From: Andalucia godoyi And28
Lineage: Eukaryota > Protista > Jakobida
Reading direction: 5' to 3'
DNA: 64,000 nucleotides
Assembly: GCA_009859145.1 (NCBI GenBank)
Contig: VRVR01000038.1
Coordinates: 62,001-126,000 of the forward strand
In this document: positions 3,030-63,542 of the stretch, in pieces
Layout of the letters: every line of letters starts with the position of its first letter
How positions within the stretch are numbered: position 1 is the first letter of the stretch
Program-made: the position numbers and the translations under genes
The notes under the pieces: model-generated
Told to the model about the DNA's origin: nothing
The model's input: the letters and a program-made list of their open reading frames with translations, nothing else
Database searches by the model: none

Positions 3030-6000
3030 TCAGCAGCGCGTTCGGTTCTCAAACACGCGGATTTCGCCACGCACGTCGGTTGTGAGAATGAGGGCGTTCT
3101 TGGACGAGTCCGATCGAAACGGGACAAACATTGCATTGGTAAGCGCACACGTTGGTCCGTCATCCACTGGAGGAATGGCCTGCAACACGATCTTTTCTTC
3201 GGATATTGGATATCCGATCGTCACGCTTCTGGCCGAAGACCCGGAGGAGGCAGAGCCACCTAGCGCGTGAGCAGGACCAGCCTTTTTTCCAGAGGGGTCC
3301 GAAGACGCAGCAAAGATGTGCTTGGACTTTGCAGCAGCAGCGGCGGTGGCAGACGACGAAGAAGCCGCGGACGCCGTCGAAGCGGAGGAAGAGGGCAGCA
3401 CATGCGATGTGGGAGTGTTTGTTGCAACGGGCTGAAGCGTCGGGAGGTTGCAAGTGGCAACGAACGCCTCGTAATGTTTGTTCAGGTCCTTGCGATGCCC
3501 TGCGACGGCCGGGTTCGGAGAACTCCTCCAAATGTATACTTTTCCGTCGTCGGATCCCGAAACAATGTACGTGCCATTTTGCGAAAAGCCGCCAACGAGC
3601 TGCGACCGCTTGTTAATATAGCCGCGATACTTGCAGCCGCACGAAAAGTCATTGATGTTGAAGAGACGAATGCGCGAATCGTTGGTGGACACCAGCACCT
3701 TGTCACCATCTGGAGATACGGAAAACCCCGTAATCTTTGGCGGCGGTGCACCGCTGCGTTTCGGCTTGTCCAAAGTAGGGGAAGCGGACTCCTGGTCGTC
3801 ATCCAACTCGCGTCGCCACGGTCTTCGAATACGCTTCCACCACTTTCTTCGCTTCGACGTGCGAATCACATCGATCCTCGTGAGTGCGCGGAACCCAAAT
3901 GAGTCCTCCGCTTCCTTGCACACGAACAGCGACCATGTTCCCTCGAATGATCCGGTCATGATCAGAATCGGAGAAGTGCCGTGCTGGACTTGGGATGCAG
4001 GTGTCATCATAACAGACAGCGAGGTGAGGAAGTTCTTTGTGTCCAGCCAGTGAAGCACCTTTTTGCCCGGTATGTTCCACAGACGGAGGCGCTCGTCCAG
4101 GGAGACAGAAAAGAACATTTTTTCATTCAGCGGATGAAACGCAACTCCAGTAACAAAATCATCGTGCTTGAACATCCACAAGCATGCGTCGCGTGATATA
4201 TGCCATAAACGAACCGTGCGATCCATGGAACCAGAAATGACAAAATTCGATGGAGACCAATCCAGGCAAAATATATCGCCAGTGTGCCCCGTCCACTGCT
4301 TGAGCGGGATCTCCTTTACCAACTTGCGCTTCTCCGCAGCAGCTTGTGAATGCGTAGTTGTGGACGAGGAAGACGCCGATTTTGTCTCCCACTGGTCCTT
4401 GCTGCTGTCCGGAGCAAAGCTCTGCGGAGGCATGCTGCCGCCACCTGCAGCAAGCCCCGCATTCGCCGACGAAGACTGCGGAGTTATTGCGCCTCGATGA
4501 ATCTTCCAGACACGAACAATCCCATCTTGTCCTCCTGTGGCAAGATACTTTCCGGTATGAGAAAACTTTGCGGCCCAGATGGAGCCTGCATGCCCCGGTA
4601 GAGCCTGAATAAGTACTACATCCTTGAACTCCCGTTCTGAATTCTTGATATTCGACGACGTTCGCACATTCCAGCCTTGCGGTGGCAAGGAAATCTGATA
4701 CGCAAATCCGTGCGGATGCGATGGACTAAACGGAATATCTTTCGGCTCTGCAGATCCCGTGCCTTTAAAGAGACACCCGCCACACAAGAAGGCGGAACCC
4801 GTCTGCTGCTGCTCCTCCTCGCCTAGTAACCCTGTCGCAGAAGGAGGCGCGGCTCCAGAAGGCGTTGCTCCGCTAGAATCGTGTCCTTGGATCTGTTTCC
4901 CGGAAAGCTGTGGAGTGTTCGCAGCACTCTGAGATGCAAACTGAGCGGCTGCAGACGGTCGAACAGGACTTGGTAGGGTGCCACGAAAATCCCGATCACC
5001 CGTCTTGCGCAACGAACTGCCAGATGTGCCAGAGTGCATTCCGGATGACGGCGATTGGCTCCTGGAAAGCGACCGCAGTCGAGGCGATTCTGCTCTTCCG
5101 ATTGTTGAGCTGTTCGACGAATCTCTGTTCCGCATTGCGGCGGGTCCAAACGACGACCGCCTCGATCTCGAACCACCATTGTCCTCAACGTTGGAAACAT
5201 GTCGAGGATGCAGCGGATTTCCACGCATGGAAAACCTTCGATACATTGGATGAAGTCCAACTGGACTTGGATCAGGAGACGACGGAATTGGATACCCTTC
5301 CTCCTCGACTATCCTCGCTTCGCCACGGGAATCTGGTCCAAACGGACTGAAGTTCCGATCTCGCATAGCGCGATCGGCGTGTTCGAATTCATGATCCTCC
5401 TCCTCCTCCTCCTCATCATCATCATCATCATCACCAGCACGAACACCAGCACGAACACCAGCATCCGCATGTGCATGCGCATGCATGTCCGCGGCTGAAA
5501 CTGAGAAGCTACGTTCTGAATCCAGCTCCGGAAGAGTGAGTTCGCGCAGCGTTTCCTCGACAATGGCAGCTTCCATCTGCCTACGTGAAATCCGATCACT
5601 TGACTCTCTCCGAATGGACGACTGACGAAACTCAGCAGCCGCATCACTGGTTTCATTGCCGCTGCTACTAACACTACTGCTACTGATTACTGCTGACTTG
5701 TAATTGGCTGCGGCTACTGCAGCCGAGAGAGATGCAGCACCAGCAACAGATGATGAAGACGGCTGAAAGGGCGGGAGTGATGGATCCACGGGCAACGGAG
5801 ATTCTTCAATAGCTGGAGAATCCGGTATTGCGACTCTGCAAACCCCTGACGAAGCCGAGTCGATTGATGGATCTCGAAGAGGAAAAGGCGTCAAACAACT
5901 GATGCTGGATTGCCCGGTGTGATTAGCGTGCGCAGATAGCACCAACTTGTTGGGAAGCGGATCGGGACTTGTGAGAATCGAAATGGAGATATGGCCCATG

Positions 6001-6080
6001 TCTCCTTCGATTGCATCTTCAAACTGTTCATCTTCATCCGAGTCCGATTCAAACAACGAATGATGATTGCTTGAGATCAT
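3030..6080 (-). CDS. WDR44: WD40-repeat protein, WDR44-like
   Basis: Acidic disordered N-terminus; IQALPGHAGSIWAAKFSHTGKYLATGGQDG, WTGHTGDIFCLDWS, FKHDDFVTGVAFHP, ITGF...VLVSTNDSRIRL, YIVSGSDDGKVYIW. Confidence 0.8.
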   Translation of the reverse strand: MISSNHHSLFESDSDEDEQFEDAIEGDMGHISISILTSPDPLPNKLVLSAHANHTGQSSISCLTPFPLRDPSIDSASSGVCRVAIPDSPAIEESPLPVDPSLPPFQPSSSSVAGAASLSAAVAAANYKSAVISSSSVSSSGNETSDAAAEFRQSSIRRESSDRISRRQMEAAIVEETLRELTLPELDSERSFSVSAADMHAHAHADAGVRAGVRAGDDDDDDEEEEEEDHEFEHADRAMRDRNFSPFGPDSRGEARIVEEEGYPIPSSPDPSPVGLHPMYRRFSMRGNPLHPRHVSNVEDNGGSRSRRSSFGPAAMRNRDSSNSSTIGRAESPRLRSLSRSQSPSSGMHSGTSGSSLRKTGDRDFRGTLPSPVRPSAAAQFASQSAANTPQLSGKQIQGHDSSGATPSGAAPPSATGLLGEEEQQQTGSAFLCGGCLFKGTGSAEPKDIPFSPSHPHGFAYQISLPPQGWNVRTSSNIKNSEREFKDVVLIQALPGHAGSIWAAKFSHTGKYLATGGQDGIVRVWKIHRGAITPQSSSANAGLAAGGGSMPPQSFAPDSSKDQWETKSASSSSTTTHSQAAAEKRKLVKEIPLKQWTGHTGDIFCLDWSPSNFVISGSMDRTVRLWHISRDACLWMFKHDDFVTGVAFHPLNEKMFFSVSLDERLRLWNIPGKKVLHWLDTKNFLTSLSVMMTPASQVQHGTSPILIMTGSFEGTWSLFVCKEAEDSFGFRALTRIDVIRTSKRRKWWKRIRRPWRRELDDDQESASPTLDKPKRSGAPPPKITGFSVSPDGDKVLVSTNDSRIRLFNINDFSCGCKYRGYINKRSQLVGGFSQNGTYIVSGSDDGKVYIWRSSPNPAVAGHRKDLNKHYEAFVATCNLPTLQPVATNTPTSHVLPSSSASTASAASSSSATAAAAAKSKHIFAASSDPSGKKAGPAHALGGSASSGSSARSVTIGYPISEEKIVLQAIPPVDDGPTCALTNAMFVPFRSDSSKNALILTTDVRGEIRVFENRTRC

Positions 6081-6140
6081 GAAGAAAACAAAAAAGGTTC
6101 ACCAAGGCTTCCTGTTCCTCCCTATTTGCTGAGTCTCTTT

Positions 6141-24113: not shown

Positions 24114-24502
24114 GTTCCTTCCAACAAACAACCACCAGAACAGTCCCTTTGAGTAAAAGCTACACACGCACGCACGCACGCACGCACGAAAGAAGGTGAG
24201 AAAAGGTGAGAAGAGCACATACTGCTGCACAGACGATTGTCGGGAGTTTATCTATTTTGAGCTTTGCGGGGAAATTCCTCCCTTTGGTTGATGCTGGGAC
24301 CGCCGTGCACGCCGAGTTTGAGTCGTACAAACGCGAAAAAATAACAAACTCATCAATTTCAGATTAGACAGACTGATACATAAGATTCTCTCTGCTTTTT
24401 TCGTCTTCTTCGCTGTACATTACACTGCAAAATTTTGGTTATTATTAATCTTTTTTCTCCTTTATTAGTGTGCGCGTGTGGGGGGTGTATTTTGTGCTTC
24501 GA

Positions 24503-25543
24503 ATGTCTGCTGTCGCTCAAGATTCTCGGGACCGTGTCGTGACGTTTGTCGGTGGAGGGTATGTTTCGTTTCTGTCCGTTCTGAAATTTTCAGGTTGTCA
24601 TTCTTTTTGCCTCGATCTAATTATGTGTGTTATTGCTATTGGGTGTTGGTGGTGTAGGCTTGGTGGTGCAGTTGGAGCGTTCATGACGAATCCGTTGGAT
24701 GTGGTCCGGACTCGGTTCCAAGCGAGAGTAAAATCTGATGTTACACAGCTTGCACAGACGTACCGATTCGCGACATTGCATGCCGTTCGGCTCATTGCAA
24801 AGACGGAAGGAGTTCCAGGGCTGTTCCGTGGATTGACACCGAATTTAGTTGGAATTGTGCCTTCGCGATCTATTTACTTTGCCACCTATTCGTCGACGAA
24901 AGGATTTTTGTTGCAACATTACCAGAAGAAAGAGAACTGGATCACACATGCGCTGTCGGCGTGCACTGCGAGCATTGTGACGTCGACCGCAGTGAATCCG
25001 ATATGGGTCATCAAGGTGCGGTTGCAGCTTCAAAGTACAAATTCGCAGCTGTTTGGAAGCGGGAGTCAAGGACAGATGTACAATGGTTATCTGGATGCGT
25101 TTTCAAGGATATTCCGTGAAGAAGGGTTTCGTGCGTTTTACAAGGGGCTCGGAGCGTCGATGCTGGGTATTTCCGAGACCGTAATTCAGTTTCTGATGTA
25201 TGAAAAAATGCGAGCATTGGTGAAGGAGCGGCGCGACCCTACTCCAGTGGACAATCTATTCGTAGGAGGACTTTCAAAGTTTTGTGCTTCGTCCATCACG
25301 TATCCGCATGAAGTTCTGCGCACAAGGATGAGAGAACAACGGACGCATGCTGGATCGCTTGTTAAACCAATGGGGTTGCTGCAAATGTCGTCGTTCATTC
25401 TCAAGGAAGAGGGTCTGGCGGCTTTCTATGGAGGATTTGGACCGCATATGCTGCGCGTTGTTCCAAATACTGCAATCATCTTTGCAGTGTTTGAACTCGT
25501 CGTCAGGGTCTTTGGATCAAGCACTATGAGAGACGCCAGATAG
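24503..25543 (+). CDS. Mitochondrial pyrimidine nucleotide carrier (SLC25A33/36, Rim2-like); one intron
   Basis: Exons 24503-24558 and 24658-25543 (GTATGT...TAG, phase 2); carrier signatures PLDVVRTR, PIWVIKVR, PHEVLRTR. Confidence 0.9.
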   Translation: MSAVAQDSRDRVVTFVGGGYVSFLSVLKFSGCHSFCLDLIMCVIAIGCWWCRLGGAVGAFMTNPLDVVRTRFQARVKSDVTQLAQTYRFATLHAVRLIAKTEGVPGLFRGLTPNLVGIVPSRSIYFATYSSTKGFLLQHYQKKENWITHALSACTASIVTSTAVNPIWVIKVRLQLQSTNSQLFGSGSQGQMYNGYLDAFSRIFREEGFRAFYKGLGASMLGISETVIQFLMYEKMRALVKERRDPTPVDNLFVGGLSKFCASSITYPHEVLRTRMREQRTHAGSLVKPMGLLQMSSFILKEEGLAAFYGGFGPHMLRVVPNTAIIFAVFELVVRVFGSSTMRDAR

Positions 25544-50357: not shown

Positions 50358-51398
50358 TCACTGTTTAGGAACTACATTGTCGCCTTTGGTGGCCTTTGGT
50401 TTGCTGTCGAGGAATACTTCATGGACCTTCTTCTGCTGCTCTGAACGTTCCTTGATCATCTTTTGAATGTTATCGAACATCCCAGGCTGCTGTGGCTTTG
50501 GAGTCATTCCTGCACGAGCAAGAGCAGCCTTCACCTCACTGTTCAACGGGATGTTCAGGGCGCGTCTGACCGCATCGCGCTGCAGCAACCTTGACGAAAT
50601 CAAAGAAAAGAAGTTGCTCGCAGTCCAATACAAGAAGACAGCTTTCGGCATCGACATGGTCAAGAAGAACATGCCAACAGCAAGAGCTCGGAAGAACCAC
50701 CGGATTCCCTTTCCCATCGGCGCAACTCCTGTGTCGGCCCCAAGCTCAATGGTTGTCAGAAACGTGAGTGATGAGAGGAGCGGAAAAATGTACAAGGGAT
50801 CCGCAGTAGTGAGATCCGTGAACCAGGAGATCCCACCGACCTTGAGTGAAGCGCAATTCTCTGCAAGATTTCTCAGTGTAATAAAAAACGTTAGAAAAAT
50901 AGGCATCTGCACAAACGCATTCACAAACGCCTTCATTGGATGGCAATCGTGCTTCTGAAACAGAGCCCTGAGCTGTTCCGTATGGTTGATCCTCGCAGCC
51001 TGGATTTCCATGGGCGACAGTCCAGAACTTCCAATATCCTTGATTTTCGCATTCAGCTCCTCCATCTGAGGGCGGATCATGGTCAGATTGGCCGTGTTTC
51101 GCATCTGCTTCACGACCAGCGGCAAAGTTGCAACTCGGAAAACGACGGTGGTTGTCAGAATAGTAATCCACCATGGAAGACCCGTTGATGCGTGAATCGA
51201 CTCAAGCGCCGAGCCAAGCCAATCGGAAGGATAAGAAATGTAGCGGACCGGCTGGCGCTGTGAAAATGGGCTCAAAACGGAAGGCATCAAAGATGTGGAG
51301 AACAGCGGCGAAGGAGTCCGCGATTGAACCATTGATCGCTGAAAAACGGCTGAACCGAAGCTTCGGCACAGAACACTGGCGGATATTCCCCGATACAT
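50358..51398 (-). CDS. OXA1: Mitochondrial inner membrane insertase Oxa1
   Basis: Presequence-like N-terminus (MYRGISASVLCRSF), GLPWW..FRVATLPL, QMPIF, WFTDLTTADP, FLYW. Confidence 0.92.
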   Translation of the reverse strand: MYRGISASVLCRSFGSAVFQRSMVQSRTPSPLFSTSLMPSVLSPFSQRQPVRYISYPSDWLGSALESIHASTGLPWWITILTTTVVFRVATLPLVVKQMRNTANLTMIRPQMEELNAKIKDIGSSGLSPMEIQAARINHTEQLRALFQKHDCHPMKAFVNAFVQMPIFLTFFITLRNLAENCASLKVGGISWFTDLTTADPLYIFPLLSSLTFLTTIELGADTGVAPMGKGIRWFFRALAVGMFFLTMSMPKAVFLYWTASNFFSLISSRLLQRDAVRRALNIPLNSEVKAALARAGMTPKPQQPGMFDNIQKMIKERSEQQKKVHEVFLDSKPKATKGDNVVPKQ

Positions 51399-51794
51399 GA
51401 TCAGCAAATCCAACAAACAGGCTCGGAACGAAGGAAAATGGGCCAACAGTATGAAACGAACGAAGAGAAAACGCTGAAAGCGAGAAATTTGAGAAGCCGG
51501 GTATAATGCATATATGAACGACGCAGAGCGCAATCCCCCAGGAAAAGGCCCGTCACTGTCTAGGGCTTCGCTGCGGTTTTCGAGAGAGGGTTTCGCTCCT
51601 GAGCCATTTTGTCCGGATCTGCTGCCTACTTCTCCTTTCGACAGCTCGCTTCTCTATTTTCATTTTTGGTGTTTTCTTTTGAGAGTGTTGACGTTCGTTG
51701 TTCTTGCTTCTCATTCTTCATCTGAGAAGCATCAAATCCATTATTTACATATTATTATTCTTTCTGGCTTGGACGGGCGATTGTCATTTTAGAA

Positions 51795-54700
51795 ATGGTT
51801 CGGGTTGGTCCAACGAATGACACAGCAATCCGTGCTACGCAAAATGAACGGTTGATGCGGATTACAGAACCGCATGTGGACTCCTTCAATTTCTTTTTGG
51901 AACACGGACTGTCTGCCGCTGTTTCGGACCTGGATGACGTTGAAATTGAGAATGCAGCGACTTCCGAGTCTCTGCGAATGTGGATTGAAGAGATCAAGAT
52001 TGGTCGACCTACACGAGACGAATCTGGCACCGGCAGAACACTTTATCCACACGAGTGTCGCGAAGCGGGACTCTCATATCGTGCACCAATGATTGCTACA
52101 GTTTGTCGCCAGGTGAATGACGGAAACATTGAGACAATGCAACGGAAACTTGGCATGATTCCAATCATGGTGAAGTCTTCCAAGTGCCATTTGCACGGTC
52201 TCTCTCCTCGCGAACTGGTCACGCGTCGTGAGGATGAAAATGAGATGGGAGGATACTTCATCATTCACGGTCTCGAAAAATGCATCCGTTTGACGATCAG
52301 TGGAAGACGAAATCACCCCATGGCGATGGCCAGACCATCCTTCGAAAGGAGAGGTCCCAAGTTTACGAAATTCGGTGTTCTCTGCAGATCCGTGCGGCCA
52401 GATCAGACGTCTGTCAACAACCTTTTGCACTATCTAACAACTGGCGAAGTCTTGTACGGATTCACGATCTCCAAACAGCAGTTCTTCATTCCGGTGGTTT
52501 TGATGTTGAAGGCAATGAAAAACTGCACAGACGCCGAAATCTTCGATCATGTGGTTGCTGGACAGTATTCAAACACGTTTTTGACAGAACGTGTGGAGCT
52601 TGTTCTTGAAGAAGCGCGGTCGCGATATCCAAACTGCAATACACAGGCGCAGTGCCTTGCATTTCTTGGGTCTCGTTTCCGGTCCCGTTTGAGGATGAAT
52701 TCCAAGATATCGGATCTTGAAGCTGGCATCGAGTTGCTGAGGAAGAATATACTCGTACATCTGCTCAGTGGGGATGCCAAGTATGACTTTGGTATTCTCA
52801 TGTTGAGGAAGCTGTTTTCACTGGTTGGCGGACAGATTATGGAAGATTCCTCGGACTCTCCTATGAACCAGGAAGTGTTGTTGCCGGGGCATATTTATCT
52901 TGCTGTGGTGAAGGAGAGACTGGAAGACTATCTGGAGTCCATTAAAATCGTTGTGAACAAAGACTTGCGACAGGATCCCTCGTCCGTCCGTTTTAGTGAT
53001 TCTGCTTATATCCGCCGTGTGTTGGACAAGAACTCCATTGATCTGGGTCGGAAACTCGAGTATTTCCTGGCGACTGGTAATTTTCAGAGTAGGGGATCGC
53101 TTGGTATCGTGCAGTCTGCCGGTTTCGTTATTGTGGCTGAGAAATTGAATTTCTACAGATACCTGTCGCACTTCCGTTCCATCCACAGAGGTCAAGTGTT
53201 TACAGAAATGAAAACGACATCTGTTCGAAAGCTGCTCCCAGATTCGTGGGGTTTTCTCTGTCCAGTCCACACTCCCGATGGCGCACCCTGCGGTTTGTTG
53301 AACCATTTGGCGCACGAAGTTCGGGTCTCGCCGTTTCTGCCTGCTGAAGTATTCGACGGAACGCTTGTGGATCGTTTGCTGGTGAGCCTCGGGATGATCT
53401 CAGTTCACGGAAATCCTGTTCCTACGCGACAAATGATCCCCGTATTGCTGGACGGACGGCTTCTGGGGCACATTGATCATCGTATCGCCAAAGTCTTTGT
53501 TGACAGTCTGCGTTTTCTCAAATGCCTTCGACAAAATCCGGAAATTCCTGACTGGCTTGAGATTGCGTATATCCCGCAGGTTGCCGAAGGTTCCGGTCCA
53601 TTTGCCGGTATTTACTTGTTTTCTTCCCCAGCACGCATGATGAGGCCTGTTCGAAACATGGCAGCAGATGCCGTGGAGTGGATTGGAACGCTTGAGCAGA
53701 TTTACTTGGACATTGCGTGCATTGATGCGGACGTCATTCAGAATCTGACGACACACAAGGAAATCTTGCCGACGCACATGCTGTCGGTAGTCGCCAATTT
53801 GACACCGTTTTCAGATTTCAATCAATCCCCTCGTAATATGTACCAGTGCCAAATGGGTAAGCAAACGATGGGCAGTGCGTGTCACAACTATCCGTATCGG
53901 ACGGATAACAAGATGTACAGAATCTTGTTTCCGCAGACTCCTCTTGCACGCACTCGATTTTTGGATGCATATGGCTTCGATGATTATCCTATGGGAACCA
54001 ACTGCTGTGTGGCAGTTATTTCCTATACGGGCTACGACATGGAAGATGCAATGATCATCAACAAGGGTGCTTATGATCGTGGCTTGTTCCATGGTGCGGT
54101 GTATACAACCACGGAAATTGATCTTGCTCTGGAAAAAAAGGGTGAACCAAACAGCTTGCGGTTCTCGAACCGAATGTCCGACGTTGCGCCGACTGAATCA
54201 GGACTTGTTGAGCCGACGCTGGATGTGGATGGCTTGCCAATGCCTGGAACACCGATGAAGCAAGGCGATCCGTTTTACGTGGTTTATGACTCAACTCGCA
54301 GCTCTCACAAGGTGATCAAGTACAAGTACGCTGAATCGTCCACCGTTCAAGAAGTGCGCATCATCCCCATGGACAAGGATAGTCCGTCTGGTATGCGACG
54401 GGTCTCTATCAAACTTCGTTTTAACCGTAACCCTGTTTTAGGAGACAAGTTTTCATCCCGACACGGGCAAAAGGGAACGCTTGCGCAAGTCTGGCCGCAG
54501 GAGAACATGCCTTTTACGGATGCTGGCATTACACCAGATGTTCTTATCAATCCCAACGCATTTCCGTCCCGCATGACGATTGGTATGTTGATTGAAAGCA
54601 TGGCCGGAAAAGCTGGTTCGTTGCACGGGGTATTCCAGGATGCGACTCCTTTCCAATTTGACGAGACTGAACACCGGGCTATTGAGTACTTTGGTGACCA

Positions 54701-55451
54701 GCTAGCCAAGGCAGGATTTCATTACTACGGAAACGAGACCATGTATTCGGGGACCCTGGGTGTTGAGCTCACCGCAGAAATCTACATGGGTGTCGTTTTC
54801 TATCAACGGCTTCGTCACATGGTCAAGGACAAGTTCCAAGTTCGTTCAACAGGCCCTATTCATGATTTGACTCACCAACCTATCAAAGGACGAAAACTAG
54901 GGGGCGGTATTCGGTTTGGAGAGATGGAACGTGATTCGTTGTTGGGACACGGAGTCTCGTATTGGTTGCAGGATCGGCTGTTGCATTGCTCTGACGAGCA
55001 TCGGGAGTTCGTATGCAAACGTTGTCATTCGTTCTTGGGGGTTGCATCCATCAAGCCTGTGGTGCACAATGCTCATGCTTTTGCCAAGCGAAGGCTCGAA
55101 TGTGTTTCTTGCAAAGCTAATGGTCTGTTGAACCCGCAGGAAGATGAGTCTGATTCTGTGGACCTCATTCAAATCCCGTACGTCTTCAAGTACCTGGTGA
55201 ATGAGCTTGCTGCAATGAACATTCGCGTCATTCTCGATACTCCGGGGAATCAGTCGATTGAGCCAATGCCATTTTCCGACATCTCCTCTGTTCAGGCTGG
55301 AAGTGGGACTGGTGCAAATGGTGCGACGATAGAGGATCGCAAAACAAAGAGAAAATCAGCAAAGTCCACAGAAGAGCCGGAGATCGGCAGGAAAGCTAAG
55401 AAACACGAATCGACCAAGTCGGAGAAGAAGCACAAGATTCCACGACAATGA
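51795..55451 (+). CDS. RPA2: RNA polymerase I second-largest subunit
   Basis: PHVDSFN, HFRSIHRG, WGFLCPVHTPDGAPCGLLNHL, NQSPRNMYQCQMGKQTMG, GDKFSSRHGQKG, GGIRFGEMERD. Confidence 0.97.
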   Translation: MVRVGPTNDTAIRATQNERLMRITEPHVDSFNFFLEHGLSAAVSDLDDVEIENAATSESLRMWIEEIKIGRPTRDESGTGRTLYPHECREAGLSYRAPMIATVCRQVNDGNIETMQRKLGMIPIMVKSSKCHLHGLSPRELVTRREDENEMGGYFIIHGLEKCIRLTISGRRNHPMAMARPSFERRGPKFTKFGVLCRSVRPDQTSVNNLLHYLTTGEVLYGFTISKQQFFIPVVLMLKAMKNCTDAEIFDHVVAGQYSNTFLTERVELVLEEARSRYPNCNTQAQCLAFLGSRFRSRLRMNSKISDLEAGIELLRKNILVHLLSGDAKYDFGILMLRKLFSLVGGQIMEDSSDSPMNQEVLLPGHIYLAVVKERLEDYLESIKIVVNKDLRQDPSSVRFSDSAYIRRVLDKNSIDLGRKLEYFLATGNFQSRGSLGIVQSAGFVIVAEKLNFYRYLSHFRSIHRGQVFTEMKTTSVRKLLPDSWGFLCPVHTPDGAPCGLLNHLAHEVRVSPFLPAEVFDGTLVDRLLVSLGMISVHGNPVPTRQMIPVLLDGRLLGHIDHRIAKVFVDSLRFLKCLRQNPEIPDWLEIAYIPQVAEGSGPFAGIYLFSSPARMMRPVRNMAADAVEWIGTLEQIYLDIACIDADVIQNLTTHKEILPTHMLSVVANLTPFSDFNQSPRNMYQCQMGKQTMGSACHNYPYRTDNKMYRILFPQTPLARTRFLDAYGFDDYPMGTNCCVAVISYTGYDMEDAMIINKGAYDRGLFHGAVYTTTEIDLALEKKGEPNSLRFSNRMSDVAPTESGLVEPTLDVDGLPMPGTPMKQGDPFYVVYDSTRSSHKVIKYKYAESSTVQEVRIIPMDKDSPSGMRRVSIKLRFNRNPVLGDKFSSRHGQKGTLAQVWPQENMPFTDAGITPDVLINPNAFPSRMTIGMLIESMAGKAGSLHGVFQDATPFQFDETEHRAIEYFGDQLAKAGFHYYGNETMYSGTLGVELTAEIYMGVVFYQRLRHMVKDKFQVRSTGPIHDLTHQPIKGRKLGGGIRFGEMERDSLLGHGVSYWLQDRLLHCSDEHREFVCKRCHSFLGVASIKPVVHNAHAFAKRRLECVSCKANGLLNPQEDESDSVDLIQIPYVFKYLVNELAAMNIRVILDTPGNQSIEPMPFSDISSVQAGSGTGANGATIEDRKTKRKSAKSTEEPEIGRKAKKHESTKSEKKHKIPRQ

Positions 55452-56140: not shown

Positions 56141-56419
56141 GTAACCAGCGACGGCGTGAGTGGGGTGAATTGTGTGATCCCTGCTTCCTGCAGAGAGCCC
56201 TCGGTTACTTGCATCGTAGTTTTTCCGGTGCGGTTTTCTTTTTCACATATTTTTTTCTTTTTTTCTTTTCTTTTCTTTTCTTTTCTTTTATTATTATTAT
56301 TATTATTTTCCCACCGTTCTTCGGCCTTCTGATATATTGATCTGTGCTCGGGGCTCCGTGCTATGTAGTGCATTGTTCTTCATTGCTCTACGTCGCTTTT
56401 AACAGTCCCTCGCTCGCAA

Positions 56420-57846
56420 ATGTATCAGCCGCCAGCATCCTTGGAGCACAGCCAGTCTGAACGAATTCTCGACAGAGATCAGTCTCCCGAGCATCGCGTG
56501 TACCGACTGCTGTCTCACATCTCCCCGAAAACCACCCTGACAGCATCCGTATTTTCCAGGGCCCTCGAACGCATATACAACAAGGTCGAGATTCTTGATC
56601 CAAACGCAAAGCTCATCGAGGTTCCCAAAGGAGATCCTCCCGATCTTCGTGTCCTGTTTCCCTTGGGTGCACCATCCGGTATGTAAGTTCCATTCTTGTT
56701 TATTTTATTATTTCTTTTTTAATTCATTGTATATCATTTTACGTAACCTCGGTTTCTGCGCATTCTGACGCTATTTATTTTTCCCTGGATTTTTCCTCTG
56801 GTGGGGCTCGTTGCGTTTGGGAAAATATGCAGGCCATACGTGCATCGTCGGTCCGACTGGCTCTGGAAAGTCAACGATTGTCCGACACATTCTTCTCGGC
56901 CTTACACAAGGAGGCAGACCAATGCAGATTTACACTTTGGAATCGCCTGTCGAAGTTGCGCTTGAAACGCATGGCATCATCGGCGTCAACCAGATCGACA
57001 TGTTTATGAAGCCAGCGGGTCGCGAGCGGACTCTTGAATCCATGGCCACGGAGATTCTCAAACACGACCCAGATATGCTGTACTTTGGAGAGCTGAGAAA
57101 CAAGCGCGACTTTGAGACCGCGACGCAGATTGCACTCAGTGGGTATGTGGGATGCTTTCTTTTTAATATATATTTAATTTCTCTGTTTCAACTTGAATGA
57201 CTTTTTCTCACTTATTCGTGTGTGCTCTTCTTCTTCTTTCTTGCTTCGCTCACCACTAGTGTCGCGGTCATCTCTACAGGACATGCATCATCACCACTGG
57301 ATTTGCTTGAACGGCTGCGTGCGATGAACATTGATCTCAAGACTCAGTTCAGAGCGTTTCAGAACATTGTTGGTGTGAAACGCCTTCCTATTCTTTGTCC
57401 GCATTGCAAACGCCGAGTAGTATGTTTTGTGCTCTGTCCTTTTTTCCGTGCCGGTGCGCTTGCTTTCTTCCTTTCTGCTTTCTAACTGTCTGTTGTTTCC
57501 CTGTTTTGTATGTTTTTTGCTGCCCAAGGTTCTTGACTCATCAATGCTTGACTCTCGGGCTCTGAGTCTGTTTAACGTGTATAGAATGGCTGCGTTGGAT
57601 CGAAGCGAGCGGCTGAAAGTGCTTCCGTTCGTCTGTTTCCCCGGTAGCCCGGCTGACATCAAGAATTGCTCCAAATGCACAAACGGGTACGCTGGGAATT
57701 ACACGATTTACGAATACTTGAAGATATCCCCTGAAGACGACATTGAGACGCTGCGGTCGCGTCACTTGTACACAACGGAAGAGCACCTGATGGACCTGAT
57801 TCTCCGCGGTGATGTGAATCCGATGTACTTGGAGAGCGTGCTGTGA
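56420..57846 (+). CDS. GspE/PilB-family secretion ATPase, 4 exons, 348 aa
   Basis: Exons 56420-56678, 56833-57142, 57260-57419, 57529-57846 (GTATGT donors, phases 1/2/0 all match, 1047 nt). Walker A GPTGSGKST, Asp box TLESPVE, Walker B HDPDMLYFGELR, His box ALSGVAVISTGH, Zn motif CPHC...CSKC, GYAG..TIYEYL. Confidence 0.9.
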
Positions 57847-58040
57847 CGAAAAAAGATCATTCTTCGCAAGCAAAAACAAGATGTGTATGTTGTTGTAAAT
57901 TTATTACTACTGAACATGATGAATTGGAAGAACGGGGAGAAGGGGGAAGGAGAAACAAACACTACAGAATGTGGAGCGACCGACTGAGCAAGGCAAAATG
58001 AAATGCAGCCAAAAGAGGCAATGGGCCTTCGAAAAGCTGT

Positions 58041-58604
58041 TCACGGTTGGGTAACGGGTGCCTGGAAGCTGACCATGCTTAGGATAGCAGGGTGCTTGGC
58101 AACCAGAGCCTTGTACTCCTCGAACGAGATGTTATGATCCTTGTTCACGTCGCCTTCCAAAAAGGTTCCCTCGACAAGATTGTTAAGCTGGGCCTCTGAG
58201 ATGTCAACCGACCGTTCCATGAGAGAAGCATGCAGAAGCTTCTTCAATTCATCCTTTGTGATGTAGCCATCGTTGTCAAAGTCCCAGATGCGGAAAGAAT
58301 ACAGCATCTTTTCCTCGGCAGTCCCCTGTGTGGAGCAGACAGACAACCCGCAGATAAACTCTCGAAAGTCGATTGATCCGTTGCCGTCCTCGTCGAAAAG
58401 AGCAAACAAGCGGTCTGCGTACAGCGTGTCCTTCAAGCCCAAAGCCTCGCGGAACTCGTTCTTGTCAATGACCCCGTCGTCTTCACGCGAAGAGGAGATC
58501 TTTGAAAATCGCTCATAAATCGATCTGATTTGATCTTGATCAAAATGCGTCGTCGTCAAGAACTGCTGGAGTTCTTCCTTCTTTTTCGAGTTCTTGTTTC
58601 CCAT
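58041..58604 (-). CDS. Myristoylated EF-hand calcium sensor (calcineurin B-like, CBL-type)
   Basis: MGNKNSK start at 58604; IYERFSKISSSREDDGVIDKNEF, FDEDGNGSIDFREF, WDFDNDGYITKDE, DVNKDHNISFEEY. Confidence 0.9.
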   Translation of the reverse strand: MGNKNSKKKEELQQFLTTTHFDQDQIRSIYERFSKISSSREDDGVIDKNEFREALGLKDTLYADRLFALFDEDGNGSIDFREFICGLSVCSTQGTAEEKMLYSFRIWDFDNDGYITKDELKKLLHASLMERSVDISEAQLNNLVEGTFLEGDVNKDHNISFEEYKALVAKHPAILSMVSFQAPVTQP

Positions 58605-59724
58605 AGTGCCGGTCGTTGAAGTTGGAGCTGATGATTTTGCGGGTGGACGAGGGACACCAGAGCGCATGAAAAGAGAAGAGGGGGGGGAAAGAAAAGGAGA
58701 AGGGGGAAAAGAAAAAGAAAAGGAGACCGTCCGAGAATGGGAGAGAAGAAAAGAGAGTGCGACAGAAAAGGTACAAGTCGGGGCGAGAATACAAATAAAG
58801 AAAAAGTAAAATAAAACACAAAATAAACCGAAGGATCCGGAATTGGGCAACAGCGACAGGCGGACTGGCGGACAGCAGAGAGTGGAGACTTCCAAAAAAA
58901 AAAAAAAAGAGAGAGTCTGATTATCAGAAAGAAGGAAAAACGGAGTCGCTTGTGCAGCATTTCTCGAGTGTATCTTCGGGGCTCTCTGGGAACCTGGAGT
59001 GGGGAATCCATCCTCGAGAGGACCTTTCATCCTTTGGCCCTTGCATCGTTGTTCTGCCTCCTGAGACTATTGCGTAAACACTGACTGGTGCCTGTGCGTG
59101 TGGCATCTGCCAACACTAGTCTGTACGAGCAGACGCCAAGGCGGAAGGTTTCACGGCCTGTTCGATACTCTCCTCTCTCTCTCTCTCTCCCTCTCTCTCT
59201 CTCTCTCCCTCTCTCTCTCTCTCCCCCCACCCGGAATGTTCGTGGTGTCCACCGCACGCCCGTTCGAGCACGGAGCATCATCCGAGTCAAAAGAAGGAGA
59301 GGAAAGAAGGAAGGAAAAAGGCGAACGCCTAAAAAAGCAAGCGACCCATATTTACACAGAGAACAGGGTCCTCTCCGAGGCTGCTGCTGGGTGAACATAT
59401 GCCAGCCTTTCCTCAAGACGGATCTCTCATGTTACGGTGCAAAGTGCGTGCTGGGCAGGCAGCAGCCTCCAGTGTTACATGCGACGTTTTTGGCACTTTG
59501 ATAACTGCTGTAAAAAAAATATATGAAGAAACCTGAGCACAAAACATGGGAAGTAAGTCGATCTTGACGAGCTAGGGTTACGCGAAAAAGCACGATATTG
59601 GATTCAAAGCAAAAAAAAAAGAGGCCGCATAAACACATGAAAAATAAAAGCGCGTGTTCTGTTCCCTTCTTCTTCTTCTTTTCAAAGACTTGTTGCAAAT
59701 TGGTTCGCTTTTTTTTGTGCAAAA

Positions 59725-60708
59725 ATGTCTGCGTTCTCTATGCCCGGTATTGACGATCGGGTCAAATGTGTACAACTGTCGGCGCTTGTTGTCTTCAAAA
59801 TCATCAAGCATGCTCGTGAGCGGATTCCACCCACGGTCGGTGGCTCTCTTGTGGGACTGTACACTGCAGACACACTCGAAATCACCAACTCGCTTCCAAA
59901 ATTGAACCAGGATGCAGAAGAGTATTCGGAAGACGCGCCTCTTCAAGACGACAAGGAGTTTTCGTACGACATGCTTCGCCATTTCCAAAAGCACCGAGTC
60001 GATGATATGATGGTCGGGTGGTATTCGTCCATGAGCTTTGCTGCTTTTTTGAGTAATCCTCAGAGCGCCCTCGGACAACTTGCAATTCAACAAGATCTTG
60101 AAGACAAGTGCGTCGTGCTTATCTTTGATCCGCAACGCTTCGACCAAGCGCTTCCTGCTTTCCGTGCGTTCCGTCTTACACAGCAGTTCATTGACATGGC
60201 ATCTCGTTTGCAGGATCGCGATGTTGCGCGGTGCGAAGTTTATGAAGAGCTTCCCGTGCGCATTCAGACGGATTCTCTGTCTGGCGCATTCCTTGGACAG
60301 TTGCAGCAGCAGTTTGGTGCGGACCCACGCCACCTTGCCGTTCGACCGGAGCCTCTGATTGAATCGAGCATGTCGTATCTTGTTGACTCTATGAATGACT
60401 ACGTTGACAAGTGTGAGACCTTTGATTGGTATCGCAAAAAGAGAACAGAGATCAATGACCGCCGGGCCGCCGCGATTCTAAAGAGGCAGCAGGAAAACAA
60501 GGCGCGTGCGCAACAGAAGCTTGCTCCGCTTGGATACGAGGACATTGATCGGTCGTTCCGAATTCCCACTCTCAAGTATACTAGACTTGAAAAAATGCTT
60601 GCTCCGTATGCATTGGACAACTATTGCGATGATTTGGTCGCCTGCGCCACACAGAACTCTGCAAGTTTGTATGTCGCTGACCAGATGTCGTCGTCTTCTG
60701 GGTTGTAA
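59725..60708 (+). CDS. EIF3H: Translation initiation factor 3 subunit H
   Basis: MPN domain: VVFKIIKH, GSLVGL..LEITNS, VDDMMVGWYSS, VVLIFDP, AFRAFRLT. Confidence 0.88.
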   Translation: MSAFSMPGIDDRVKCVQLSALVVFKIIKHARERIPPTVGGSLVGLYTADTLEITNSLPKLNQDAEEYSEDAPLQDDKEFSYDMLRHFQKHRVDDMMVGWYSSMSFAAFLSNPQSALGQLAIQQDLEDKCVVLIFDPQRFDQALPAFRAFRLTQQFIDMASRLQDRDVARCEVYEELPVRIQTDSLSGAFLGQLQQQFGADPRHLAVRPEPLIESSMSYLVDSMNDYVDKCETFDWYRKKRTEINDRRAAAILKRQQENKARAQQKLAPLGYEDIDRSFRIPTLKYTRLEKMLAPYALDNYCDDLVACATQNSASLYVADQMSSSSGL

Positions 60709-62430: not shown

Positions 62431-63542
62431 CTACAAACCACGGTTCACAATCACACGCTCATTTTGGTTATGAACCTTCGAGGCAAAGTGGGGCTCCAGA
62501 TTCTTGGTATCAATTTCCATGGTTTGCGGGAAAACCGCCAACGTTAAAGGAAGGAAGACAAACATGCCCAAGCCAACGAGCGATGCGTTCACGAGAACGT
62601 TTCCAACTTTGGATTTGATACGATCTTGTAAACGGAATGCCATGTACGTCGCCGGAGGGAGAACCATTACAGGAAAGGCAGTCAAGACTCGAGTGATGGC
62701 AGTCTGGATGATTGCCAACTTGCCGGCTTCCGGAGACTTTCCAAGGTACGTTCCCTTCTTGTCATAGATGCTCACTCCTTCAACAGTTTCATTGCGTCTC
62801 ATCAAGTAGACGTTTGCAGCAGATGCAACAGCGACGGCAATGAAAGGAGAAAACTTGCGAAACTTCGAAGCAACCGGTACAGCTTTGTCCATTAGGAACG
62901 ACGTTGCCATCGCGGCACCGGTTGCGCCTCCGTAGGCTTGCAGCAATTGCTGATTCGACAATTGCTGGAGCGTGACGTTTTAATTAAATTAAAAAACAGC
63001 GCGTGAGAAGAAGAAAATGAAAACAAACACGACAATCAATCAAGCGTCGAAAGGAAGCTGCAAAGAACATACATTGCTGGCATTTCGGTTTGCATAATTG
63101 ACGCACGTGTTGTAACTCTGGTTCACAAACTGAAAGAACAAATTCGCTGAAGTACAAACAATAGAGGATTGTAAATACACGTTTCTGTTGACGAGTAATC
63201 GCAAGTTGTGTGTCTGTTAACAAGAAACATACCGGACAGTGATTGAGCTGTCAACATCCCTGCAACAATAACAATGTTCATTGGGACAGCCGCAGACATT
63301 CGAAACGGAAGCGGAATCACATCCTTCGTGTCCGGATGGATCATCGAATCTCGCACCTTCATTGCATACTCGACTTCCTCGGGCGTGTAGTCTTTCGCAT
63401 TTTCCAGGACGTGCATGTAATGATTCAGATCCGCCTTTGTCACGAACAGCGTCCGCATGTCCGTGATCTCAAAACACTTCCGCACACGTGCGACATATCC
63501 CTGGAACCAGTTGGGACCGAAGAAACTCGTAAACGGCACCAT
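62431..63542 (-). CDS. SFXN: Sideroflexin, 3 exons, 305 aa
   Basis: Exons 63542-63233, 63146-63073, 62964-62431 (GTATGT donors, phases 1/0); HPDT..IPLPFRMSA.VPMN, QFVNQSYN..VNYANRNAS, PFIAVA.AS.ANV.LMR, NRGL. Confidence 0.93.

Follow-up and report, generated by a model that had tools for sequence, protein, structure and literature searches.

A nuclear three-intron gene of the jakobid Andalucia godoyi very probably encodes GspE, the motor subunit of the mitochondrial type II secretion-derived system

Identity of the gene

The locus at positions 56420-57846 of the plus strand of the stretch of DNA analyzed here (64,000 nt of contig VRVR01000038.1, hereafter the window) is very probably the nuclear, three-intron gene ANDGO_05877, encoding GspE, the motor subunit of the mitochondrial system derived from a type II secretion system (T2SS) in the jakobid A. 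godoyi (miT2SS). Its spliced product matches GenBank protein KAF0852419.1 (transcript ANDGO_05877.mRNA.2) with 100% identity and 100% coverage, an identity with a curated entry that excludes chance. The entry is named [quoted passage not shown], and the same sequence is printed under "GspE / Andalucia godoyi" by Horvathova et al. (2021, Nat Commun 12:2947; PMC8134430) in their Supplementary Data 1. The gene has been deposited, named, and analyzed in that study and in the genome paper of Gray et al. (2020; PMC7050145). ANDGO_05877 is an already published miT2SS gene and nothing is new at the gene level; the novelty implied by a preliminary description of this DNA does not hold, as the gene appears in a preprint (10.1101/790865) and in the papers of 2020 and 2021. 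That description nonetheless provides a case in which a reading of the sequence alone arrived at an accurate gene model with three introns and identified the function correctly: its first option, the miT2SS ATPase, is what the protein was published as. Three points developed below, namely a clade-wide His-box substitution, the location of arginine fingers on GspEN2A, and a shared PTS2-like motif, are not stated, as judged by term searches, in the available portions of the main text and supplements of PMC8134430 and PMC7050145.

Gene structure

Splicing of 56420-56678, 56833-57142, 57260-57419, and 57529-57846 (+ strand) produces an open frame of 1047 nt, i.e., 348 amino acids plus a stop codon, which begins with the ATG at 56420, the first start codon past an in-frame stop. 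The features are as follows.

56420..56678, + strand: exon 1; aa 1-86 and the first base of codon 87; eukaryote-specific N-terminal region
56495..56521, + strand: PTS2-like nonapeptide RVYRLLSHI (aa 26-34), then SPK; within a predicted helix, residues 23-34 (AF2 model)
56679..56832, + strand: intron 1; 154 nt, GTATGT..CAG, phase 1, GC 0.35
56833..57142, + strand: exon 2; aa 87-190; Walker A at 56850-56873, Asp box ESPVE at 56940-56954, Walker B and catalytic Glu at 57066-57098
57143..57259, + strand: intron 2; 117 nt, GTATGT..TAG, phase 2, within codon G190, immediately 5' of the His box
57260..57419, + strand: exon 3; aa 190-243; His box V191..H198 at 57261-57284, first CxxC (C236-C239) at 57396-57407
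57420..57528, + strand: intron 3; 109 nt, GTATGT..AAG, phase 0
57529..57846, + strand: exon 4; aa 244-348 and TGA; eukaryote-specific insert between the zinc half-sites, second CxxC (C290-C293) at 57667-57678, C2E portion of the domain

The preliminary description had joined four ORF pieces through three GTATGT...AG introns into 348 amino acids, and this model is exact, its product being identical to KAF0852419.1. GC content is 0.34-0.44 in the introns versus 0.52 in the exons, and the unspliced reading frame meets a stop two codons inside intron 1. All three splice junctions sit in gap-free alignment blocks with orthologues, and two orthologue genes (L003 and L004, from Logan) are translated continuously across the three A. 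godoyi intron positions. The GspE gene of Naegleria fowleri contains one phase-1 intron of 109 nt, 11 codons downstream of the position of A. godoyi intron 1. Conservation of intron positions was therefore rejected: with the N. fowleri intron offset and L003 and L004 uninterrupted at all three sites, the A. godoyi introns are not shared. An alternative acceptor of intron 3 at 57584 (TATAG) leads to an annotated isoform of 263 amino acids (KAF0852418.1), which was discarded as the main product because the invariant residues C290, C293, G296, Y297, and E305 would be lost.

Mitochondrial location and the N-terminal nonapeptide

GspE of Naegleria and of Gefionella reach mitochondria when expressed in yeast as GFP fusions, and the Gefionella protein interacts with itself in a bacterial two-hybrid (BACTH) assay (Horvathova et al., 2021). 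According to the same study, GspE, GspF, GspG, GspEN2A, and GspEN2B of N. gruberi belong to the mitochondrial proteome cluster. By analogy with its Naegleria and Gefionella orthologues, A. godoyi GspE would be mitochondrial as well. The preliminary description had found no classical presequence at its N-terminus, in agreement with the published predictions (TargetP "other", MitoFates "no"; Horvathova et al., 2021). In the working scheme, GspE would sit at the matrix face of the inner membrane as an ATP-driven motor, acting via GspF to have the GspG pseudopilus assembled; the pseudopilus would in turn push cargo through the GspD pore.

The nonapeptide encoded in exon 1 may be relevant to this location. 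Pex7 is the receptor of PTS2, whose strict consensus is taken here to be R[LVIQ]xx[LVIH][LSGA]x[HQ][LA]; the A. godoyi sequence deviates from this form of the consensus at position 9 (I) only. The strict consensus fits 6 of 13 GspE orthologues, and a relaxed pattern fits all 15 with an available N-terminal region. In the Gsp sequences compared, which cover six parts out of 12 in Supplementary Data 1 (Horvathova et al., 2021), a motif consisting of R, an aliphatic residue, any two residues, an aliphatic residue, any two residues, H or Q, and an aliphatic residue, often followed by x-P, is present near the N-terminus of GspE, GspEL, GspEN2A, GspEN2B, GspF, and GspG across lineages, with R at position 1, H/Q at position 8, an aliphatic residue (rarely F) at position 9, and often Pro at position 11 kept in the six protein families. 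The motif is absent from the GspD and GspDN1-3 sequences examined within these parts. The carriers are the components that match the cytoplasmic and inner-membrane side of the bacterial machine, while GspD and GspDN1-3 correspond to its outer-membrane and periplasmic side. Separately, PTS1-like tripeptides are found at the C-termini of the GspDN2 sequences in this set.

Gcp1-3, three WD40 proteins, are paralogues of Pex7 whose phyletic pattern is exactly that of the miT2SS (Horvathova et al., 2021). We tentatively suggest, as a possibility clearly short of an even chance, that GspE, GspEL, GspEN2A, GspEN2B, GspF, and GspG share a PTS2-like signal that would be read by Gcp1-3, forming a dedicated receptor-signal pair that sorts or assembles the machine. 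With Gcp1-3 as readers of the motif, the presence of peroxisomal-receptor paralogues alongside a mitochondrial secretion system would be explained.

A competing reading, whose chances come a little closer to even, is that the nonapeptide is the Tom20-binding core of a mitochondrial presequence, with no link to PTS2, Pex7, or Gcp1-3. The Tom20-binding pattern is taken here as hydrophilic, hydrophobic, any, basic, hydrophobic, hydrophobic, any, and RVYRLLS fits it in this form; the import of the GFP fusions in yeast and the N. gruberi proteome assignments point in the same direction. However, sequence conservation from one supergroup to another, or among proteins that are not homologous, is not a trait of ordinary presequences, whereas positions 1, 8, and 9, and often the Pro at 11, are kept here in six families, and standard predictors of mitochondrial targeting score many of these carriers as "other". 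The six GspE orthologues that match the strict PTS2 consensus, and the existence of three Pex7 paralogues with exactly the phyletic pattern reported for the system, also argue against a plain Tom20 core. If the shared signal and its reading by Gcp1-3 are real, the tag and the Pex7 paralogues together offer a testable explanation of the link between mitochondrion and peroxisome in the miT2SS, and additionally account for the sorting of proteins without a predicted presequence.

The ATPase core and its split partner

The profile search called for in the preliminary description assigns the protein to the expected family: Pfam T2SSE (PF00437) matches residues 82-314 with E = 4.9e-26 and 91.7 bits (gathering cut-off 24.9), and the best NCBIfam matches are GspE, PilB, and ComGA. 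These NCBIfam matches do not reach equivalog level, with 79.9 bits versus 617 for PRK10436 GspE and 68.3 versus 675 for PilB. Matches in the PDB are to PilF and EpsE, at about 1e-14. The AF2 model (pLDDT 85.6) has PilF, GspE, and PilB as its top Foldseek matches, with E-values from 1e-19 to 1e-16, and hhalign of the eukaryotic against the bacterial GspE profile gives E = 7e-32 over residues 58-313.

The motifs listed in the preliminary description (Walker A, Asp box with D>S, Walker B, His box with H>V, CxxC...CxxC) were all found where it had placed them. Walker A (GPTGSGKS, aa 93-100) is invariant in 20 of 20 aligned eukaryotic and bacterial sequences. In an alignment of 70 sequences, E123, P125, and E127 of the Asp box (E123-S-P-V-E127, aa 123-127) are invariant, as are D165, P166, G172, E173, and R175 of the atypical Walker B with its catalytic Glu (DPDMLYFGE173LR, aa 165-175) and the second His of the His box, H198. 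The Asp-box Glu coordinates Mg and the second His (H420 in PilB) contacts the gamma-phosphate (PMC5424180). The Asp-box Ser replaces the Asp of most bacteria; bacteria themselves vary here, some of them having Asn. The four cysteines of C236xxC239 and C290xxC293 are invariant or nearly so and form a putative zinc site.

Two residues have been lost. Val (V191) takes the place of the first His-box His in 15 of 15 eukaryotic GspE, whereas all 46 bacterial sequences keep that His, and, as judged from this alignment, the H>V change is common to the whole eukaryotic GspE clade. Similarly, the Arg of GYxGR, invariant in the same number of bacterial sequences, is lost throughout the clade and is an Asn in the window protein. 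Given these two losses, the activity of GspE may be altered.

The core is also short at its N-terminal side, as noted in the preliminary description, with the N1E domain absent and N2E almost wholly so. No sequence matching N1E, the GspL-binding domain of T2SS GspE, was found N-terminal of the core, consistent with Horvathova et al. (2021), and in the hhalign comparison homology to the bacterial profile starts at residue 58, just past the N2 hairpin that carries two arginine fingers. Residues 35-57 were aligned to this hairpin by MAFFT and are predicted by AF2 to form a beta-hairpin, a placement for which the hhalign match, which starts beyond them, gives no support. The two arginines of bacterial N2E are invariant and 15 residues apart (R206 and R221 of P0055); these fingers are completely conserved in the family, and in PilB (R271 and R286) they contact the Asp-box Glu and phosphates (PMC5424180).

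Horvathova et al. (2021) described GspEN2A and GspEN2B and proposed a GspE-GspEN2A heterodimer, in agreement with the split of GspE into N2 and C-terminal polypeptides mentioned in the preliminary description. In the nine GspEN2A sequences available from the published set, the C-terminus displays an invariant YRVN.IRTNHELG.YH.VMR.LQ, both arginines included, that hhalign sets on the bacterial D.RVStLPt..GEK.V.RIL; the match is weak (E = 0.005, probability 7%), covering the first N2E helix only when two GspEN2A sequences are compared with bacterial GspE, and the whole domain, still weakly, with all nine. With the two-arginine hairpin as the C-terminus of a separate GspEN2A, the active sites of GspE would be completed in trans by its arginine fingers. 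Such completion is plausible because the N2 domain of bacterial PilB packs on the ATPase domain of the neighboring chain, and, with the fingers placed on GspEN2A, the proposed split-ATPase heterodimer can be tested by specific mutations.

The loss of the cis N2 fingers, together with V191 in all eukaryotic GspE aligned and the missing Arg of GYxGR at positions that bacteria keep invariant, could also mean that GspE retains the fold and is no longer an autonomous ATPase, serving as a regulatory or scaffolding subunit instead. This is unlikely: every residue listed in PMC5424180 as universally conserved and catalytic (Walker A Lys, Asp-box Glu, catalytic Glu following Walker B, and one of the two His-box His) is retained without variation across the clade. 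In addition, Horvathova et al. (2021) see the degenerate subunit in the paralogue GspEL, which has abrogated Walker motifs.

Eukaryotic origin and genomic context

The protein is 51-63% identical to GspE of Naegleria, Willaertia, Acrasis, Neovahlkampfia, and Gefionella, versus at most 36% for bacterial relatives, and bit scores fall from 222 (eukaryotic GspE) to 81 (bacterial relatives). In the phylogeny, proposed as a check in the preliminary description, it is not nested among bacterial PilB/PilT: all 50 bootstrap NJ trees recover eukaryotic GspE as monophyletic, on a stem of length 0.84. The other components that were to be looked for, GspD, GspF, GspG, and GspEN2, are all present in the genome according to the published data; Horvathova et al. 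(2021) list, in Supplementary Data 1, GspD (KAF0852335.1), GspF (KAF0853007.1), and GspG (KAF0853042.1) of A. godoyi, and GspEL, GspEN2A, and GspEN2B are also reported there. Given the monophyletic clade and GspD, GspF, and GspG in the genome, the alternative offered in the preliminary description, an independently domesticated pilus or secretion ATPase, has to be abandoned.

The neighbors of the gene encode RNA polymerase I subunit 2, Oxa1, an EF-hand protein, eIF3h, sideroflexin, TTL, Vac14, ZPR1, and a Rho GTPase, and Pfam scans of 29 large ORFs in the window gave ordinary eukaryotic genes. Peptide checks against the available sequences found none of the A. godoyi GspD, GspF, and GspG in the window. 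No other Gsp or Gcp gene was found there either, 12 peptides (from Pfam-less ORFs and a WD40 ORF) being absent from the accessible sequence tables of Horvathova et al. (2021), a negative that is not absolute, as the peptides were taken from stop-to-stop ORFs.

The bacterial type of the domain could point to contamination, or to a PilB/PilT gene acquired by recent horizontal transfer and unrelated to the miT2SS, but this reading is refuted by the three spliceosomal introns, the eukaryotic genes on both sides within a 279-kb contig, the low bacterial identity compared with that to eukaryotes, the long stem of the monophyletic clade, and the GspD, GspF, and GspG of the same genome. The preliminary description had argued likewise from introns and neighbors, to which the clade can be added. 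A chimeric contig was also rejected, the window matching contig VRVR01000038.1 of assembly GCA_009859145.1 at every one of 17,581 compared bases and the neighbors being eukaryotic.

Comparison with known systems

Like PTS2, the nonapeptide has R at position 1, aliphatic residues at 2, 5, and 9, and H/Q at 8; in the sequences compared its distance from the N-terminus is 9-46 residues, and it falls within a predicted helix. Unlike PTS2, the A. godoyi copy has I in place of L or A as its last residue, Pro is often found at +2, and the carriers are reported as mitochondrial and not peroxisomal, GspEL excepted (Horvathova et al., 2021).

With bacterial GspE/EpsE and PilB/PilF (PDB 1P9R, 4KSR, 4PHT, 5OIU, 5IT5, 5TSH), the window protein shares the fold of the ATPase core and keeps Walker A, the Asp-box glutamates, the atypical Walker B and catalytic Glu, the second His, and the tetracysteine module. 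In contrast to them, it is without N1E and almost all of N2E, both arginine fingers included, has Val for the first His-box His and Asn for the GYxGR Arg, contains an insert of about 20 amino acids between the two CxxC pairs, and is nucleus-encoded, with introns and a eukaryote-specific N-terminal region; it also scores far below the NCBIfam equivalog cut-offs of the bacterial proteins. Its domain content, C1E and C2E only, is that of the described miT2SS GspE, and the partners described for that system are the same: GspD, GspF, GspG, GspEL, GspEN2A, GspEN2B, and Gcp1-16 (Gray et al., 2020; Horvathova et al., 2021).

Gene model and identity of the product

The ANDGO_05877 gene of Andalucia godoyi, encoding the GspE protein of the mitochondrial type II secretion system (miT2SS), is assembled from four pieces:

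56420-56678, + strand, exon 1
56833-57142, + strand, exon 2
57260-57419, + strand, exon 3
57529-57846, + strand, exon 4

Once joined, these exons form a 1047-nt frame of 348 codons plus TGA, while the unspliced frame meets a stop two codons into intron 1. The three introns (154, 117, and 109 nt; phases 1, 2, and 0) all follow the GTATGT..AG pattern and have a GC content of 0.34-0.44, versus 0.52 for the exons. This four-piece, three-intron model had been put forward in the preliminary description, made from the sequence alone, and splicing bears it out: the product is identical (100% over 100% of the query) to the deposited 348-aa A. godoyi protein (KAF0852419.1, ANDGO_05877.mRNA.2), named at NCBI [quoted passage not shown]. 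The gene occupies positions 118420-119846 of contig VRVR01000038.1 (GCA_009859145.1), which matches the window at each of the 17,581 bases compared. Horvathova et al. (2021; PMC8134430) give an identical sequence as the A. godoyi entry for GspE in their Supplementary Data 1; by their account, their Gsp/Gcp names were taken over when Gray et al. (2020; PMC7050145) annotated the A. godoyi genome. The protein is thus the published miT2SS GspE, which supports one of the two readings first proposed, and the finding as such is already known.

A. godoyi gene models were checked against RNA-seq data, and only 12% of 864 characterized candidate mitochondrial-protein genes contain introns, most of them a single one (Gray et al., 2020; PMC7050145); with three introns, GspE thus stands out in this genome. 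A shorter product, KAF0852418.1 (mRNA.1, 263 aa), has also been deposited; in it, the intron 3 donor at 57420 is joined to an alternative acceptor at 57584 (TATAG), which shifts the frame and ends the protein early, without the second CxxC and the C2E part of the domain. Since residues that are invariant in the second zinc half-site and in C2E would be missing from this isoform, the 348-aa form appears to be the functional product, and the 263-aa isoform is probably non-productive. Upstream of the gene, the intergenic region carries a pyrimidine-rich low-complexity tract, (CTTTT)n + (ATT)n, at 56240-56310, about 110-180 bp before the start codon.

Motifs, structure, and active-site residues

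All the motifs initially listed are in place: Walker A (GPTGSGKS, aa 93-100), the Asp box (ESPVE, aa 123-127), Walker B with the catalytic Glu (DPDMLYFGE173LR), the His box, whose first His is replaced by V191 while H198 is retained, and the zinc module (C236xxC239 and C290xxC293). The gene model and motifs are thus confirmed. In profile searches, Pfam T2SSE matches the spliced protein (E = 4.9e-26), and the top NCBIfam models are GspE, PilB, and ComGA, all well under their equivalog cut-offs. By sequence, PilF and EpsE are the closest proteins of solved structure (~1e-14). The AF2 model (mean pLDDT 85.6, from a 70-sequence alignment) retrieves PilF, GspE, and PilB as top PDB matches, with E-values of 1e-19 to 1e-16. 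Profile-profile alignment of eukaryotic with bacterial GspE/PilB (E = 7e-32) covers residues 58-313 and shows that the eukaryotic proteins carry an insert of ~20 residues between their CxxC pairs.

The key residues named by McCallum et al. are all present and invariant in the eukaryotic GspE clade, except for the arginine fingers. The two substitutions noticed from the sequence, Asp-box D>S and first His to Val, are both seen. The former affects a position that is not fixed in bacteria either, N being found there; the latter (V191, 57261-57263) is common to the eukaryotic clade, with Val in 15/15 eukaryotic and His in 46/46 bacterial sequences. Similarly, the Arg of GYxGR, invariant in 46 bacterial GspE/PilB, is Asn here (N297, 57688-57690), and the remaining eukaryotic sequences have N or Y at the aligned position. 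V191 and the loss of this Arg are hence clade-wide rather than Andalucia-specific.

Relatives and origin of the gene

Eukaryotic orthologues from Naegleria, Willaertia, Acrasis, Neovahlkampfia and Gefionella (relatives P0012 and P0016, respectively), and from metagenome/Logan proteins, are 51-63% identical to the A. godoyi protein. The top bacterial matches reach at most 36%, and bit scores drop from 222 to 81 between the two groups. A quick NJ tree built from 266 columns recovers the 19 eukaryotic sequences as monophyletic in 50/50 bootstraps, with a stem length of 0.84 substitutions per site; this agrees with PMC8134430, where eukaryotic Gsp sequences are described as set apart from bacterial ones by long branches. 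The phylogeny suggested at the outset gives a single eukaryotic clade. One Logan sequence, L003 (SRR15116022), probably from an Andalucia relative, encodes at 291-1930 an orthologue with 51% identity; its downstream neighbor is a tail-to-tail EF-hand gene, the arrangement also seen at 56420-59030 of the window.

Conservation of intron positions was considered and rejected. The only intron of the Naegleria fowleri gene (L002:3001-4642), 109 nt long, interrupts the codons for Walker A (GPTGS|GKS). Like A. godoyi intron 1 it is in phase 1, but it lies 11 codons farther downstream, close to the position of that intron without coinciding with it. Two Logan orthologue genes, that of L003 among them, translate without a break across the A. 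godoyi intron positions.

The window contains ordinary eukaryotic genes, including:

24449-25540, + strand, mitochondrial carrier, farther from GspE
50361-51653, - strand, Oxa1 (Oxa1/60KD_IMP), upstream of GspE
51726-55448, + strand, RNA polymerase I subunit 2, upstream of GspE
58041-59030, - strand, calcineurin-B-like EF-hand protein, downstream of GspE
59641-60705, + strand, eIF3h, downstream of GspE
62434-62979, - strand, sideroflexin, downstream of GspE

More distant genes encode TTL, a huntingtin-like HEAT protein, Vac14, ZPR1, a Rho-type GTPase, and a protein kinase. With eukaryotic genes on both sides of GspE, the original case against bacterial contamination holds, and contamination or recent transfer is excluded as the origin of the gene. 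Besides GspE, genes for mitochondrial proteins in the window include Oxa1, the mitochondrial carrier, and sideroflexin, with no sign of functional clustering; in the 21-kb stretch around GspE, gene calls were limited to GspE, Oxa1, and sideroflexin. No further Gsp/Gcp gene was found in the window, peptides of the unassigned ORFs and of a WD40 ORF (3033-6098) being absent from the sequence tables of PMC8134430.

A PTS2-like motif shared by miT2SS proteins

Residues 26-34 of GspE (56495-56521), within a predicted helix, read RVYRLLSHI and are followed by SPK. The corresponding pattern (R, aliphatic, x, x, aliphatic, small or hydrophobic, x, H/Q, aliphatic, often then x-P) lies 9-46 residues from the N-terminus of every orthologue whose N-terminal region is available: 13/13, plus two more after upstream extension of truncated gene calls, as for L003, where the upstream frame restores RMQAVLSHV. 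Six orthologues match the strict PTS2 consensus R[LVIQ]xx[LVIH][LSGA]x[HQ][LA], e.g., RVSTILRHL in Naegleria, RVQTILNHL in Acrasis, and RIEALGRQL in Gefionella. In the 6 of 12 parts of the PMC8134430 sequence tables that were surveyed, GspE carries the motif in 8/8 species, and so do most members of five other families:

Occurrence of the motif in other miT2SS families (6 of 12 parts of the published sequence tables)
GspF: 8/8; A. godoyi RVYRLVRHL
GspG: 8/9; A. godoyi RIKAILSHM
GspEL: 10/10
GspEN2A: 10/10
GspEN2B: 5/7

Within the same parts, these six families span jakobids, heteroloboseans, malawimonads, and hemimastigotes; the motif is absent from GspD (12 sequences), GspDN2, GspDN3, the few GspDN1 sequences examined, and Gcp8, and Gcp9 has just a related half-motif, ..FP[RK]. 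A relaxed pattern gave no match in 55,064 residues of bacterial GspE/PilB; 15,785 residues from ORFs of the window contained it twice, each time internally, and the analytic expectation is ~0.002 per 60-residue N-terminus. Against this background, chance does not account for the motif recurring in six families, in N-terminal extensions that are not homologous to one another, and in four eukaryotic lineages.

No description of the motif in Gsp proteins was found by term search of the main text and supplements of PMC8134430, in a 2023 review, or in literature searches. The PTS2 receptor, Pex7, has paralogues in Gcp1-3, which co-occur with the miT2SS, and a peroxisome link has been speculated (PMC8134430); our hypothesis is that Gcp1-3 may recognize the PTS2-like signal of Gsp proteins. 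The main competing explanation, that the motif is the conserved Tom20-binding core of a mitochondrial presequence, fits the reported mitochondrial location of its carriers, but leaves the conservation of positions 1, 8, 9, and 11 unexplained. GspDN2 sequences in the surveyed parts of Supplementary Data 1 (PMC8134430) terminate in PTS1-like tripeptides (SRL, ANL, PSL, PRL, PRM, PKM), and for most species the PTS1 predictor scores them positive, in contrast with the N-terminal PTS2-like tag of the E, F, and G families.

A proposed split ATPase with arginine fingers in trans

From the literature and homology, GspE would be a matrix-side motor driving assembly of the GspG pseudopilus through GspF, the pseudopilus in turn pushing cargo through the GspD pore. 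The bacterial N2E domain closes with D.RVSTLPT..GEK.V.RILD, in which two arginines are invariant; they lie 15 residues from each other, as do R271 and R286 of PilB (PMC5424180). These family-wide arginine fingers are absent from the N-terminal region of the A. godoyi protein (56420-56600), whose detectable homology begins right after the N2E hairpin, at ILD (residue 58). The preceding segment, aa 35-57 (56522-56590), is conserved and eukaryote-specific, with invariant P36, F45, S46, and E50 and a predicted beta-hairpin; MAFFT aligns it to the last bacterial N2E hairpin, hhalign does not, and the segment may be vestigial or serve in docking.

GspEN2A (KAF0852423.1 in A. godoyi) ends in YRVN.IRTNHELG.YH.VMR.LQ, with both arginines invariant in nine species, and hhalign places this segment on the bacterial hairpin in an alignment across the whole N2E domain (a weak match, E = 0.005). 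From the start of homology at residue 58 and these invariant arginines, we infer that ancestral GspE may have split at the flexible N2-CTE linker, and we hypothesize that GspEN2A would supply the arginine fingers in trans, completing the GspE active site. Such an arrangement is structurally plausible, since the N2 domain of PilB packs on the ATPase domain of the neighboring chain as a rigid "packing unit" (PMC5424180). The shared PTS2-like tag and the trans arginine fingers are hypotheses on published sequences that deserve a specialist's look, the latter as a refinement of the GspE-GspEN2A heterodimer proposed in PMC8134430.
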